A stretch of DNA of 64,000 nucleotides from Tetramitus jugosus (Eukaryota; Protista; Heterolobosea): assembly GCA_937625935.1 (NCBI GenBank), contig OW569365.1:1-64000 (forward strand). The letters are read 5' to 3'. Below the pieces are notes generated by a model. It was not told the origin of the DNA and did no database searches. It was given only the letters and a program-made list of their open reading frames with translations. A program made the position numbers and the translations under genes. Shown in pieces: positions 178 through 7,488 of the stretch; positions within the stretch are counted from its first letter, which is position 1, and every line of letters begins with the position of its first letter.

Positions 178-889
178 CCCAAACCCAACCCAAACCCAAA
201 CCCAAACCCAAACCCAAACCCAAACCCAAACCCAAACCCAAACCCAAACCCAAACCCAAACCCAAACCCAAACCCAACCCAAACCCAAACCCAAACCCAA
301 ACCCAAACCCAAACCCAAACCCAAACCCAAACCCAAACCCAAACCCAAACCCAAACCCAAACCCAAACCCAAACCCAAACCCAAACCCAAACCCAAACCC
401 AAACCCAAACCCAAACCCAAACCCAAACCCAAACCCAAACCCAAACCCAAACCCAAACCCAAACCCAAACCCAAACCCAAACCCAAACCCAAACCCAAAC
501 CCAAACCCAAACCCAAACCCAAACCCAAACCCAAACCCAAACCCAAACCCAAACCCAAACCCAAACCCAAACCCAAACCCAAACCCAAACCCAAACCCAA
601 ACCCAAACCCAAACCCAAACCCAAACCCAAACCCAAACCCAAACCCAAACCCAAACCCAAACCCAAACCCAAACCCAAACCCAAACCCAAACCCAAACCC
701 AAACCCAAACCCAAACCCAAACCCAAACCCAAACCCAAACCCAAACCCAAACCCAAACCCAAACCCAAACCCAAACCCAAACCCAAACCCAAACCCAAAC
801 CCAAACCCAAACCCAAACCCAAACCCAAACCCAAACCCAAACCCAAACCCAAACCCAAACCCAAACCCAAACCCAAACCCAAACCCAAA
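178..889. repeat. Telomeric tandem repeat (CCCAAA)n / (TTTGGG)n, ~118 copies
   Basis: Near-perfect hexamer array at the window start with the C-rich strand 5', the expected polarity for a left chromosome end. Isolated CCCAA variants near 184 and 273. Ends abruptly at 889. Positions 1-177 are a degraded C/A-only version. Confidence 0.97.
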
Positions 890-2770
890 TGAACTTTCTT
901 CCCAAAAATCAAAAATTTCATTCGAATTCAAAACAGAACCGATCTATCATCTAAAATCTGATCAAATAAGATAAATGGAAGTTAAACCACTCGCCCCATT
1001 TCTATTTCCATCATTTGACATTCACTCCTCAGCTTTTGTCCAAAACAGAAATCTCCTCATAAAAAGCTCAACATCTGGAAAGCTTAGAGGCAATCAAGTG
1101 AGTCATATACACGTTTTACATGTAATCATTTCTATTTCTCTTCAGTAATGACAGGTTGTGTCTGGGTATTCAACTCTGCATCCAAGGAAGTCTGAATAAT
1201 AGAAATATATTTCTCTCACGAGCCAATCTCACTCCAAAATAGTATTTTCTGCAATATTTCTCAGTCAATTACGTTCATAGGTATGAATTCTTATCAACAA
1301 GCAAGATCTACTCTTATTTTATGAAGATTGGGTCTGGACTATTACTCTGCACTCATCTTACGAACTGAGAAGTTTAAATCTCATTCTGCCTGTCAAATAT
1401 GTCAAAATATTCCCTTCAAGAATGAAATCTCTCGTTCATCATCAATAATTCGGTACAAATTAGTTGATTTCTCCAGTTCAAGAGTGTTTCATATGATTCA
1501 CAAAATGAAATTCAAAAAATGAGCCTATTCGACCTAAACTATTTCATTCAACAATGAAATATCTCAATTTTATCCGTAATATCTCTAAAACCGGTGATAA
1601 TCTTCAGGTCAAGAGAATTTTAAGTCAATCAAAAGCCAGAGCACCGAAATGCAACTCAATATGTCAAACAACAACAAAAAAGAACAGAAATAACTGAATT
1701 AATGCTTCAAATGAATACTAGAGGTCTAAAATTTCAGTCTAAAATCTGTAAAAACTGTTCTCTTATCATACAGTCCAGTGATAATCTCAAGCTTTTCTGA
1801 AAAATCCTTTCATAGAAGTCTGTTGCAGTTTTTATCCTGTTGCAGAGAAAATCTGTTAGTTACAGCAGGGAGCGATCGTCTCTTCGAGATGATAGAGTTT
1901 TAATCCTGTTAAATCCTGTTAGAGCTCGTTGAGATGAAGTATTTGTACTGAAAATTCCTTCGGGTTGGGTCTAGACTTATGACATGAACCCCAAACTCAA
2001 ACTCAAAACTCTCCCATATTTAGACAATCCTCTTCCATAAAAGGCAATATTTTGTCGGTTCAGAAGCGAATATAAAGTCCCAAACCCAAAACCCACCCCC
2101 CCAGAAGAAGAACTTTCCCAAGATTTTCAGTCTATAACATTCGTAAAACTGAATTGGCGTTCAACAAAGCTAGTACTCTCGATTTCTGACGGGTTGAGTC
2201 TGGCGTTTCAACTATAAACTCGATTCACATTTGAAACTTGACTATTTCACTGTCTTACAGGATTTTAAATCGAAAAGTCTCAATAATAGATAAAACATCT
2301 GATCCTACAGTGATTATTTGATAAAAACTCTCGATTTTATCCAGAAAAACACTAAATCAAGTCAGTCAAAATTTCTGAAAAATCAGGTACTCAGAAACTG
2401 AGGCAAAAAATAAAGTTGGAAGATAATTATGTTAAAAATGATCAAATACTGTCTCAATACCCTGATTCAAAACAAAGAAATCATGTTTCACTCGTACGTC
2501 TTACCCCCAGTATAGAATCAAAGTCATCTAAAATCTGTTGCAGTTTTAACACTGTTGCAGATAAAAATCTGTTAAATACAGCACAGATATATCGGCTCTA
2601 CGAGCCGATAAAGCTCAAATCGAGTTGAAAACCACGCTAATCTCTTCATCTCATCTATCTGAAGCTCATAGAGCAATAAAAAATCTCAAAAAAAAATTAC
2701 CATATAAGGAAATCGTTTCCTTAGGTTGGGGAATCCTGGATGTATCCCCAAACCCAAACCCAACCCAAAA
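890..2770. repeat. Subtelomeric mosaic of degenerate repeats with interstitial telomere-like tracts
   Basis: No credible ORF. Diverged direct repeats at 1415-1504/1547-1634 and 1819-1897/2534-2613. GGGTTG-GTCTGG...CAAC motifs near 1150, 1326, 1961 and 2189. C-strand telomere-like tracts at 1987-2009, 2079-2102 and 2746-2770. Confidence 0.75.
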
Positions 2771-3460
2771 ATTCATAGACAGACCGGATTGCGTTGTGAG
2801 GAACCGAGTCGAAGGCTTTTGATATATCTGTCAGCAACAGAAACAGTTGTCTGTTGTTCCGATTGGCGTGATCAATGACACCTCTGATTATAGAAAGCTT
2901 TTCCCTAATGTCCCTGAACCTTCTGCCTCCGCCTTGCACGTTTGAGAAGATGCCACCGGTCTCTGCAGCCTTGGAGATCCTGCTGTTGATTAACTTGGTG
3001 TACAGCTTTGATACGGTACTCAACAGACAGATTGGTCTGTAGTTGGCAGGATTAGAAGTATCTCCCTTCTTGAATGCTGGGATAATTATCCCCTCTTTCC
3101 ACATTTTGGGAAAGATCCCTTGTCTGGTGATATTGTTAAAGAAATCAGCAAGGATCTCTGAGAGATCATACCTGTAGTCACGTTCTTTTGTGATGGGGAC
3201 TTTCAGCATTTCATTATGTATTTTGTCAACACCGGGACATTTACGGTTTCTTAGCCAACCAATGGCTTTGCTAACTTCCTCTGTAGTGATAGGGGTGAAT
3301 GCTTCGTGTATTGTTGCTCTGTGCCCATCACTTTTTAGCGCTCTTAGATAATCCATGTTGGCAACCTCAGAGGAGAAGGCACCTTCAAAGTACTCCGCAG
3401 CCAAGTTACCCACTGTGACCTCATCTGTGTACTCTATTCCATTCTTCTTCACTCTAGAAA
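2763..3460 (-). pseudogene. LINE ORF2 reverse transcriptase, N-terminal part only
   Basis: Motifs KCPGVDKI, WKEGIIIPAFKKGD, NYRPICLLSTVSKLY, QGGGR and TDISKAFDSVPH are present. The frame runs into telomere-like sequence (WVWVWG) before the QG and YADD motifs. Confidence 0.92.
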
Positions 3461-4236
3461 GCCTTACCATAATGGACCCATCTAGGGTCTTTCTTGTCCT
3501 TGGGGAACTTAAACATCGTTCCACTATATACAGTATTTGTGCCAGTTCTGGCTTTTATCGTGACTAAAGTAGGGACATGATCGCTATGTACACCATTGGA
3601 TGTGAACATTTCTACCTTGTCAATTGCTTCTATTATTGCTTGGTTGCACCATACTGAATCTATTCTCGACGAGGACTTCCTGCGGAAGAATGTATGGAAT
3701 CTTTCTACTCCCATTACCTCATTGGTGTCACACAGGTTGTTCTCCTTCAACATTTGCAGCAGTAATGGCGTGTTTTCGTCTACTCTGTTCGAGGACCGGT
3801 CAGTAGCAGCTGTAACGGCATTATGATCACCTCCTAAAATGAACTTTCCTTGGACAGCGTATTTGCTAATCGTTGCCCCGATTGATTTGTAATGTTCACG
3901 ATTCTTTTTGTGAGGTCCATAGTGGTTAGCTATCGTAATCGACTCATCCACCGTTGATACCTTGATTACTTGCAACCTGGATTCACTGTGCATCACTCCA
4001 TATGATGGGACAGTAGTGGTTCTGACAATTGCTGCCAAGTGTTGATTGGGAAGATCACACACCAGAACACACTTAATTCTCTCTAACTTCCTGTTGAGTA
4101 CCTTGTACCATGCTTCATCAATGTTAGTTGCCTCCTGTATTAGCAACACATCTATTTGCTCAGACTCCAGAAAGTCCACGACATCATTGGCTTTACCCTT
4201 TATGCCGTTGATGTTGTACCACATCACCTTCAACAT
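3454..4236 (-). CDS. LINE ORF2 apurinic-like endonuclease domain (frame broken from RT)
   Basis: WYNINGI, LLIQEA, NHYGP, LGGDHNA, HTF, SRIDSVW and SDHVP are the standard EEP/APE motifs. The ATG overlaps the ORF1 stop by 7 nt. Confidence 0.92.
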   Translation of the reverse strand: MLKVMWYNINGIKGKANDVVDFLESEQIDVLLIQEATNIDEAWYKVLNRKLERIKCVLVCDLPNQHLAAIVRTTTVPSYGVMHSESRLQVIKVSTVDESITIANHYGPHKKNREHYKSIGATISKYAVQGKFILGGDHNAVTAATDRSSNRVDENTPLLLQMLKENNLCDTNEVMGVERFHTFFRRKSSSRIDSVWCNQAIIEAIDKVEMFTSNGVHSDHVPTLVTIKARTGTNTVYSGTMFKFPKDKKDPRWVHYGKAF

Positions 4237-5534
4237 AATTGAGATGTGTGGTCTGACTGGGGTTGAGACACCTCATTACTGTGTATCACATGGCTGGTCA
4301 CAGCACGCGCCACTTCCTTACTGGCCTGAACAATATCAATCATATCGGCCAGCCGAACCGGGGTCTTCAATAAAGCTCTTTTCCTTGAGTTTTCTGAGAG
4401 GGCTGTATTGGGACCTCTCTTTCCACTCTCCTTTATAGGAGTATCTTCTCGAGGCACAGTGAACTTGTAGATGAGCGTTTGGCTATCTGAGAGTGCGCGC
4501 TCCCGTCTCTTCTCTCTTCTCGCTCTCACTAACATTTTCCTCCTCTCCTCAAGCAGCTGGGCTTCAGTGTTCTCATTTTCACCCATAGGTATTGGATCCT
4601 GAACTATCGTAGTGTCCTCCCCTATTACTTCAACACTTGGTGGTTCTATCTCCGGAGTTGTGAGTACCATTGGCTCGTCAACATTCATTTCTTCTCCCAA
4701 CTCGGGTGGTGCAACGCTAGTAGTTTGTTCTCCAGCGTTTGAGCCATCTTGTTCAGAGATTGTTTCATCTCCTAGCATTGAAATGTCATCGTCTGGTGAC
4801 TCACCAGATACTTCATCTACTCGTTGAAGCTCTCCTCTCTTTGATTTATGTACTTTTCCACTCCTTTTCTTGTTCATAGCCTTCTTCAGGCTCGTTTCCA
4901 GCTGTGCAACTCTTCTCTTTAGCTCTTCCATCTGCTTGTTTAAGGAATCAGTGATCCTTTGTATCTTCTTGGACATTAGTTTCATTGGATCTTGATTTCT
5001 CTGGACATATGGGCTAATCTCTGCTCCAATCTGCTTGTTTCCAATGACAGCATGAGCATATGACTGGGATGTCATCGTGACAAATGCTGTGCTGCCCTTA
5101 ACTTCCACGTGATGCACTCTATCCTCTCCAATGAGTTTAGCGATGTCGTCCTTTGACCTGCCGAGGACCTTGTGAACCACAAGTTTTTTCTCCGAGTCAA
5201 GACCTCTCTTGATGGATGCATGAGCGTTTGCGATTCTTCTTGACTCATTGAACATCTCAGCAAACTCATAGAGTTTATCGTCCTTCACGTTCACCCACGC
5301 AATAAACTGGCCTTTCTCCCATCGTCTGACATGTGCACGAGTAACCCACTCCTTGTACCTTGAGCCAATCATTTTTGCAATTGTTGGTGCTGTGTTATGG
5401 CACTGTGTACCCTTGATCACGACTTCTTTTTTGTTGATGCTACTTCCAATGTTCTGTACTGTCCATACTGCGTACCCGTCACGCGAGTACTCCCTTGCCC
5501 CCGGAGAGGATGGAATGTTTGCATTTGTTTCCAT
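4230..5534 (-). CDS. LINE ORF1 protein (two RRM-like domains, coiled coil, acidic tail), ~434 aa
   Basis: First ATG outside the tRNA (METNANIP) follows an A-rich leader. RNP2/RNP1-like pairs KEVVIKG..FIAWVNV and KKLVVHKV..TAFVTM, then heptad region IQRITDSLNKQMEELKRRVAQLE. Lies directly upstream of EN-RT. Confidence 0.8.
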   Translation of the reverse strand: METNANIPSSPGAREYSRDGYAVWTVQNIGSSINKKEVVIKGTQCHNTAPTIAKMIGSRYKEWVTRAHVRRWEKGQFIAWVNVKDDKLYEFAEMFNESRRIANAHASIKRGLDSEKKLVVHKVLGRSKDDIAKLIGEDRVHHVEVKGSTAFVTMTSQSYAHAVIGNKQIGAEISPYVQRNQDPMKLMSKKIQRITDSLNKQMEELKRRVAQLETSLKKAMNKKRSGKVHKSKRGELQRVDEVSGESPDDDISMLGDETISEQDGSNAGEQTTSVAPPELGEEMNVDEPMVLTTPEIEPPSVEVIGEDTTIVQDPIPMGENENTEAQLLEERRKMLVRARREKRRERALSDSQTLIYKFTVPREDTPIKESGKRGPNTALSENSRKRALLKTPVRLADMIDIVQASKEVARAVTSHVIHSNEVSQPQSDHTSQLC

Positions 5535-5609
5535 GGTTTTTTTTTTCGCGTTTTTGATTTTTTTTTTCTCTACTGCGTGTTTATTTACCCGAACGAGATG
5601 ATAATATCT

Positions 5610-5705
5610 TCCCATATAGTCTAGCTGGTTAGGATATCCGGCTTTCACTTCCAAGCTGATTGCTAAAGTTCCCGGAAGACCCGGGTTCGAGTCCCGGTAT
5701 GGGAG
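5610..5705 (+). tRNA. tRNA-Glu(TTC) with 23-nt intron (5648-5670)
   Basis: Acceptor TCCCATA/TATGGGA. Anticodon stem TCCGG/CCGGA with loop CT-TTC-A^C. T arm CCGGG-TTCGAGT-CCCGG. Intron at the canonical 37/38 position, with AAAG pairing to CTTT (C32 with the antepenultimate G). TTTT terminator at 5709-5712. Confidence 0.95.
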
Positions 5706-6108
5706 ATCTTTTGCCGGATCTCACAAATTGTTTTTTCGCTTCTCATTTTTTTTGCTGATTGGCTCGCGCCTCTGTTTTGCTCCCTGCTGAATCTAACGCA
5801 GTCTTGAGAAAATGCTCACATTGTTCGCTGGCTCATTGATGTATTTTCTATGAGAATAGGTATTTACTAACCTAACCATTTTGAGCACAGCTTCTCTACA
5901 TTGAACACCTTTTCGTTCTTTTTTGGAATTGATACACTGATATTTTTTGTGTTGGGATTACTTTTTTTGCAATAAAGAGAACTCCATTTCAAGTAGCAAG
6001 GTATTTTTTCACATTGTTGTATCGAAATAACAAATTTTCTTCGATTGACATAGATTTTTCTACCTAAAATACTAGTAGTTTCATTTGAGGGACGTAATAC
6101 TTTCGATA

Positions 6109-6531
6109 ATATCTGGACGCTCTCATTTTGACTGAGAAGATTCAGATATATTGAGTTCTGTGAAATATTCGTTGAATATCGATGTTGAATTATTGTGATA
6201 TGAATGGCACTTGTTGGTATTGCACCTAGTTGTTGGGCTTTAGTAGTCGCTATGGTTTGTGGTACTCAGTATATCTACTGTCCTTTGTTTTCATAAGTAT
6301 AATGGAATGTACGAAAAGATAAATTTGAATCGAATTATTGAAAGTCAAATGATCTATATCGTACATACAACGTTATGAAGAAGTCAAAATAAATTTAACA
6401 AGGATATGAGTACTATGGATATGGGAAATCAGATATGTGGAATATGTACCCTTCATATGATTGTCGGTAGTAATCTGTCACTTGATACAGAGTCATCCCA
6501 ATAGTGGGTCATAGTGGGAGCGTCCAGATAT
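6109..6531. mobile_element. Putative MITE (non-autonomous Tc1/mariner-type), 423 bp
   Basis: 24-bp terminal inverted repeats at 6109-6132 (ATATCTGGACGCTCTCATTTTGAC) and 6508-6531 match 21/24. TA on both flanks (6107-6108, 6532-6533). No internal ORF. Confidence 0.7.
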
Positions 6532-7488
6532 TACATCAAATATTTGAGGCTCCGAATAATCTATTGTGAACAAATTGTGCCGATTGAAATGTGATCAAGA
6601 CTGAAGAAAATTGTTTGCAACAAAAGGAGAGTTTTTTAGTGATAGCTCAAACTCTTAGCTTCATATTTTGAAAGCCATTTTCAGGGAATTCGAAACCATT
6701 GACTTGTCTGACCCAAAACATTTCAATATCAGAGGTATTTTATTGTGAATTATAATTGGGGCGCTGTAGAATCCGATCATCTTTTGTTGGTTCTGTTTGG
6801 AGACAATGGAACGTTAAAATTCATCACAAGATAGTATCACCTGATGGTTCTCTTCTTTCAATTGGTAATTACATTGTAAGGAAGAAGGAACAAATATCTA
6901 AGTGCCAACTCAACTGAAAGTAAGGAGCATGTCTCAGACGACATAGCACTCCGAATTTTCGGTAAGAATAATAGAGTTTTTTGTATTCACAGTATGATGC
7001 TGAGTTCATCAATGATGCAACCAACAACTATGTTATCTAAAGCTTCAAAGAGCTTCTTCGAACAGAATTGTTGCTGCTCACCAAGCCCCTTTTATTAAAC
7101 GCAAAAAATCTCATGGCCACTATTAAGAAAAAGAAGAACATAATCTGTTCAAGTGTTGTGCGCATAGTTGATAAAATGCTCAGAAAATATCCCTCTCCAA
7201 CATTGAAGGTAGTATCAGCTGTCAATGATACGTCTCTGATGAACCTGTTTCCATCTATGCTCATGCAACTGAAAAGTTGCTCTAGGGAGTGTAAAACAGA
7301 CCTGGACGTTCATTGTTTTTCCCTCAATATTAATCCAAGACCAAATCCGTCGTTTCTGTGCGATATGTCTGACTTTTTTTGTGGTCATGGTTGGCCATGT
7401 CTTATGGTATAGTTTTGTAACCAGCCATATGATTTCATCAACAAGAAAGCCAATGAGAAATGTTGAATACAAGAATTTGATCCAAAGT

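Follow-up and report, generated by a model that had tools for sequence, protein, structure and literature searches.

Behind the telomere at the left end of contig 22 of the Tetramitus jugosus assembly lie two non-coding units, A and B, which we propose, with a probability of about 0.6, to be non-autonomous passengers of the reverse transcriptase (RT) of an apparently endonuclease-less Penelope-like element, attached to chromosome ends that were devoid of a telomere and capped by telomerase. Their location, polarity, fixed ends, junction anatomy, many separate attachments and the chains that they share with the Penelope-like element can be read from the assembly; what we infer is an RNA, the enzyme that copies it and the way in which copying is primed.

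The source assembly comprises 26.35 Mb in 56 contigs, and the window analysed here is the 64-kb left end of contig 22 (contigs are given below as C22 and so on, with L or R for an end where needed). The published account of the T. jugosus assembly, which lists 52 chromosomes, 26.3 Mb and data from two PacBio runs plus one Hi-C run, leaves telomeres and repeats unmentioned (PMC11106597), and a 2026 preprint with transposon counts for the species is silent on Penelope elements. Twenty left ends and 30 search loci were read directly (L numbers below denote stretches of sequence); for most right ends, for contigs above 20 and for the middle of the C10 chain we relied on match coordinates alone, and the right-end lengths of contigs above 20 that enter our counts of copy position are inferred values.

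Anatomy of the two units

The telomere occupies positions 1-889 of the window (about 890 bp of (CCCAAA)n on the + strand) and caps the 5' end of unit A; unless stated otherwise, the features below lie on the + strand. Unit A (890-2095) is full-length, running from a defined 5' start to a working tail, and is 86-88% identical to copies on C4 and C14. It opens with a conserved start motif (890-935) that is common to A, A', B, B2 and a further family, G, and weakly present in four others. Towards its 3' end, positions 1819-1865 hold three direct copies of a CTGTT motif, spaced 16-18 nt apart beside a palindrome, which had been read from the letters alone as stem i (1819-1828 with 1837-1846) and stem ii (1853-1865) and whose structure has no support from covariation. 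Hairpin iii follows at 1875-1893 (an 8-bp stem with a TTC loop, GAA on the G strand), and then a G-rich arm (1962-1970) and an old, decayed tail (1989-2009), together spanning 1962-2009. The tail that unit A now uses (2079-2095) lies at the end of a 3' extension (2010-2095) that was seen only behind A modules.

Unit B (2102-2766) is joined head to tail to A and is 5'-truncated, starting near position 343 of the 1010-bp full copy. The same series of direct repeats is found at 2534-2581 (stem i, 2534-2543 with 2552-2561; stem ii, 2569-2581) and is followed by hairpin iii at 2590-2610 (a 9-bp stem with a TAC loop, GTA on the G strand). A second perfect hairpin (2705-2723) directly precedes the G-rich arm (2724-2730), which is complementary to the last tail repeat. 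The tail itself (2746-2766) is a fixed, element-encoded C-strand tail with a 5-nt variant repeat at its end, and this is where the unit is attached to the chromosome, in this case to an APE-type LINE (ORF1, endonuclease and RT; 2767-5534, - strand) that is cut in the middle of its RT domain at the junction.

The sequence-only reading had presented A and B as diverged copies of a stand-alone module with a tail, sharing four stems. All four stems can be read in both, and the kinship is far beyond chance (76% identity over 99 nt, E ~1e-13); the extent, however, has to be revised, for each module is only the 3' quarter of a longer non-coding unit of roughly 1.0-1.2 kb. No open reading frame of more than about 60 codons and no frame conserved among copies was found in the units. 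An Rfam search of positions 880-6500 returned a tRNA as its sole match and no hammerhead, and a scan for the hammerhead core motif, which covers permuted or degenerate cores only in part, found none on the sense strand near the tails.

Distribution across chromosome ends

A and B represent a real, young and widespread family. Units are present on at least 47 chromosome ends, roughly half of the ends in this genome. Hairpin iii occurs at 60 genomic sites, 59 of them near contig ends, and 58 of these 59 have the C-strand polarity, reading from the telomere inward; likewise, the B 3' motif is found 19 times forward at left ends and 19 times in reverse at right ends. Full-length copies start at the identical base behind the telomere, even between subfamilies that are 20% apart, and many other copies are 5'-truncated at scattered breakpoints. 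The head-to-tail chains that the sequence-only reading had cited from Penelope-like elements are present here, as in the A-B chain, and are capped by telomere repeats; a gene for the telomerase reverse transcriptase (TERT) was also found in this genome.

Identical versions of the window's A+B block (890-2766) are found on C6, C21, C22 and C34, each with its own inner junction, and 100% identity between copies extends over 0.6-1.9 kb, the telomere junction included. The 5' ends are mosaic between subfamilies; on C40L and C48L, for example, the bodies are identical and the first bases differ. Both features count against passengers of an RT, the identity through the telomere junction being predicted also by DNA copying, and they speak for a spread by DNA alone, in which the units would be a Y'-like subtelomeric repeat copied together with the telomere by break-induced replication, template switching or end-joining of terminal fragments, and the hairpins DNA features or protein-binding palindromes. 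We regard such a spread as unlikely, though far from negligible, considering also that transposition and DNA repair both expand MoTeR arrays in Magnaporthe (PMC7367193). If it were true, A and B would be an ordinary subtelomeric repeat.

At least five further non-coding families of 0.8-1.4 kb (loci L035, L040, L041, L043, L044, L045, L050 and L033:3751-5281) also have C-strand tails and are chained with A/B and with the Penelope-like element; several have a related 5' start, and some carry palindromic 78-bp repeats. In several full-length units (in L033, L034, L035, L041, L044 and L050) the shared 5' motif is directly preceded by a G, in some cases where the unit lies behind a telomere and in others where it follows a Penelope tail; this extra G could be templated or could be a copy of an RNA cap.

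At one terminus the order is different: on the left end of C12 (L042:1780-2873) a B tail is joined to an inverted, tail-less A unit, the sole terminal copy in reverse polarity. There are also two internal copies, a partial B copy at C51:187766-187921 and a decayed Penelope copy at C50:168443-169151, which are possibly scars of chromosome fusion or of internal repair. A pattern scan of metagenomes for diverged relatives gave one bacterial match, by chance.

In two soil metatranscriptomes we found four short contigs on the units, at a depth of 2-3 and unstranded, and a repeat with at least 50 copies is the first thing to be expected from contaminating DNA in such data. The organism's own runs have even intergenic coverage and behave as DNA.

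Junctions and the tail

The junctions provide the strongest evidence. All 29 inner flanks of the readable B copies are distinct from one another, as the sequence-only reading had foreseen when it opposed variable junctions at the tail to shared flanks, and plain segmental duplication is thereby ruled out. At 21 of these 29 junctions the same 20-nt tail is kept, ending in the five-base variant repeat, which in true telomeres we saw once in 981 proximal repeats and at one of 38 telomere roots. Since the variant is kept at junctions and is rare in telomeres, the tail belongs to the element; that it is made anew by telomerase at each site can be dismissed, the variant being nearly absent from real telomeres. 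Microhomology was 0-2 nt at the ten junctions for which the target is intact elsewhere. All this suggests that the donor was free and linear, with the end of the tail as its 3' terminus, and that copying began at this free terminus.

A spread by DNA alone does not account for junctions of this kind, which join the exact tail end to targets without homology to the donor, nor would it predict the absence of any inner flank shared among copies. A telomerase seed invading the tail would be expected to leave canonical repeats innermost, yet it is the variant last repeat that is kept in most cases.

The junctions also modify the earlier idea that the C-rich 3' end anneals to an exposed G-strand, since most of them have no leftover telomere tract for such pairing; only one B copy, on C10, sits on one. 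On C35R and C50L a full-length 5' start follows the tail immediately, without any telomere repeats between them.

An RNA might also be copied by another enzyme, either telomerase working on a long template or the RT of an APE-type LINE acting without its endonuclease at damaged ends. Candidates for both are at hand, given TERT and about 60 LINE-type RT matches above the cut-off in this genome, and telomerase, too, starts on bare ends with GGG. Even so, we give this explanation little credence. The variant repeat in the tails of B and A' is absent from real telomeres and hence is not a working telomerase template, and the 29 unrelated flanks among the copies read likewise rule out the tail as a template carried by the telomerase RNA. 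Passengers of a LINE would be expected throughout chromosome interiors, yet the copies are terminal with one exception; nor do they have a poly(A) tail.

A Penelope-like element in the same chains

Weak RT matches near chromosome ends proved to be a Penelope-like element with DKN, RT and thumb motifs. Its RT is found at ends of C3, C9, C10, C17 and C48, in near-identical copies on C3, C10, C17 and C48 and in older ones on C9 and elsewhere. In a genome-wide Pfam search no GIY-YIG match coincided with a Penelope RT site, and from that search and the parts of the element that we read (some 230 RT residues lie outside these) the element is predicted to be endonuclease-less. A weak GIY-YIG match was seen at C47:381807-381908, about 5-6 kb from the right end and not at the place of a Penelope RT match. 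In a comparison of RT proteins the element had three close relatives, beyond which matches were 22-31% identical, the named ones being fungal.

An endonuclease-less Penelope-like element at chromosome ends had been anticipated by the sequence-only reading, and the resident one bears this out: its copies have the same polarity as A and B, short C-strand tails and blunt junctions, and they are joined directly to the units. On C17 the order is telomere, B and Penelope, with B attached to a truncated RT gene, and on C9 an A' unit lies between two Penelope copies. The C10 chain runs from the telomere through B and Penelope to what its coordinates indicate to be a full-length A, and on C48, again judging by coordinates, a unit precedes the Penelope copy.

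What did not hold is the expectation that the 3' end of the autonomous element would contain this module. A/B gave no significant local alignment with the 3' region of the Penelope element, and a covariance model of the module found nothing in the Penelope loci. The Penelope 3' untranslated region has instead a hairpin of its own with a GGG loop (L033:3441-3455, L039:1978-1994, L051 and L052), which covaries strongly across subfamilies and relatives in GCA_037189345.1, with 4 of its 7 pairs changed on both sides and two G.U pairs on the sense strand. We consider it a candidate recognition signal for the RT in place of a hammerhead. This hairpin is absent from A and B; together with the missing 3' kinship this counts against A and B as passengers of this RT, as the basis on which the RT would recognise them is left unexplained.

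Structure of the 3' modules

The argument for RNA from the structure of the units is weak. Several independent compensatory changes are expected of a conserved structured RNA, and the sequence-only reading had counted on covariation across copies; in our family alignment of 23 distinct module copies from five subfamilies, one of 22 pairs shows a compensatory change, from one event, and 469 of 500 shuffles reach the same count. Stem i, which had been taken for a conserved stem, is better described as a direct repeat of a quasi-palindrome, with one pair broken in 13 of the 23 variants, another in 5 and no compensatory change among them. Stem ii stands as a 4-bp stem, its closing pair being broken in 4/23. 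Hairpin iii is conserved and does show the two-sided change attributed to it, which is a single event between the A and B subfamily lines. Nor do the wobbles work on the + strand only, as had been claimed: two variants of hairpin iii have G.U pairs on the + strand and three have them on the - strand, so that the wobbles name no strand. The fold-back onto the tail was recognised correctly as far as the pairing of arm and tail goes, which is perfect in B and found likewise in subfamily A'; the arm is, however, fully complementary to the final repeat of the tail, not to its start. The single compensatory change, the lack of a strand bias in the wobbles and the lack of a hammerhead core all weigh against the RT-passenger proposal.

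When compared with 200 shuffles, module B folds with a z-score of -5.7 on the + strand and -2.9 on the - strand, and module A alone, with a z-score of -1.4, folds no better than the shuffles. We also tried to assign the strand from such scores. Of ten 3' windows of units, eight folded better on the + strand; yet no preference of this kind is seen in the 3' region of the Penelope element, for which the sense strand is known, so that the test cannot tell the strands apart.

Read on the G strand, the one expected for a cDNA, the loops of hairpin iii are GAA, GTA or GCA, closed by a C-G pair. This motif is known for its exceptional stability in DNA (PMC3201870). Hairpin iii may therefore act as DNA, which would suit a spread of the units by DNA alone. 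The three direct repeats, with their short spacing and a palindrome next to them, resemble binding sites, and one could picture A and B as non-autonomous DNA elements whose tail is cut and integrated by a site-specific recombinase or an HUH enzyme. We find this highly improbable: a match to the tyrosine-recombinase family PF00589 was not found in the genome (a weak negative at the sensitivity of the search), the targets have no attachment sequence in common, and neither 5' truncation nor strict polarity would be expected of such elements. Both this explanation and copying by telomerase or a LINE RT fit worse than either RT-dependent passengers or spread by DNA alone.

A/B and the Penelope element do have in common, apart from a tail, a perfect hairpin with a C-TNC-G triloop located 100-260 nt before it, and such a loop occurs in none of 21 background triloop hairpins. 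This is a lead only, spotted post hoc; three decayed copies break the hairpin, and the Penelope relatives from the other assembly are without it. At L053:3336-3354, a distant Penelope-like relative (36% identity) has a hairpin that agrees with hairpin iii of the window's unit A in 14 bases, possibly by chance.

A proposal for the attachment of the units

Based on the features of the junctions and chains we can outline how passengers of the Penelope-like RT would be attached. An RNA would start at the 5' motif on the telomere side, run inward and end in the C-rich tail. The Penelope-like RT, which is probably unable to cut DNA, would use a free 3' OH where a chromosome has broken or its end has eroded away completely, leaving it bare or with only a few G residues added by telomerase, and copying would begin at the extreme end of the tail, helped by no more than 0-2 paired nt. 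The unit would be copied wholly or partly, with a possible switch to a second template that would yield head-to-tail chains, and telomerase would then cap the product. Read-through RNAs might move composites, such as the A+B block found on four ends, and DNA recombination between ends probably adds mosaic copies later.

A bolder version of this proposal, which we hold to be doubtful, is that the amoeba keeps non-coding RNAs of unrelated sequence, which have the start motif in common and bring their own telomere tails, as patches for broken chromosomes, so that the Penelope-like RT pastes a patch, the subtelomere is rebuilt and telomerase caps it. If true, RNA-templated healing would serve the host beside telomerase, and a template would be chosen by its tail and fold and not by descent from the RT element.

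Comparison with known systems

Endonuclease-less Penelope-like elements are terminal, with the 5' end toward the telomere, a short C-strand tail, 5' truncation, head-to-tail chains and telomerase caps (PMC8557442, PMC6431247). A and B resemble these elements (Athena, Coprina and Terminons) in location, polarity, tail, 5' truncation, chains and caps, and an RT-coding element is present in the same chains here. They differ in being non-coding, with no Penelope-type RT and no detectable hammerhead beside the tail, in sharing no sequence with the RT-coding element and in being mostly found on ends without telomere repeats.

MoTeR2 of Magnaporthe oryzae is likewise a short partner of a telomeric retrotransposon, with the same polarity, 5' truncation and arrays with telomere-like junctions, and it spreads by transposition as well as DNA repair (PMC7367193). 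Unlike A and B, MoTeR2 has 5' and 3' sequence in common with MoTeR1, and its insertions are into telomere tracts. MoTeR1 itself is a non-LTR element that encodes an endonuclease and is not Penelope-like. Repeats on most chromosome ends are also known from yeast (Y') and Drosophila (HeT-A); HeT-A relies on an RT supplied in trans, and Y' spreads through telomere-like tracts. In contrast to A and B, both are protein-coding; HeT-A ends in poly(A) and takes the place of telomerase, and Y' lies between true telomere tracts. Other non-coding passengers of Penelope-like RTs that occur head to tail are MRC1, further non-autonomous Chlamys elements and the non-LTR retrozymes (PMC8557442; bioRxiv 10.64898/2026.07.22.740005), which differ from A and B in resembling their autonomous partner at the 3' end or in having a hammerhead, and which are spread genome-wide by endonuclease-bearing partners. 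Thus A and B act like Athena and Coprina in their attachment and are passenger-like as MoTeR2 and MRC1 are, yet they stand outside those families, having no RT, hammerhead or shared 3' sequence. The literature that we searched, to which the primary papers on Athena/Coprina and Terminons do not belong, contained no report of non-coding passengers unrelated to their endonuclease-less Penelope partner.

Telomerase has its closest living relatives in the telomere-attaching Penelope-like elements, and the start of their reverse transcription has not been shown in vitro (PMC8557442). In T. jugosus, non-coding templates that are unrelated to the RT gene appear to share its route, and they outnumber the RT element about tenfold. 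If confirmed, they would offer minimal substrates, already at hand, with which to define the features recognised by such an RT, and they would show that RNA-templated healing can build most subtelomeres in a eukaryote that has telomerase.

Further observations in the window

The LINE that received unit B has its 5' end (LINE at 2767-5705) head to head with an intron-containing tRNA-Glu gene, some tens of bases upstream of it. Copies on C46, C34 and C20 are arranged similarly, and the arrangement can be likened to that of Dictyostelium TRE5. Further inward, at 6096-6544, lies a MITE-like inverted repeat with 37-nt arms that are 375 nt apart.
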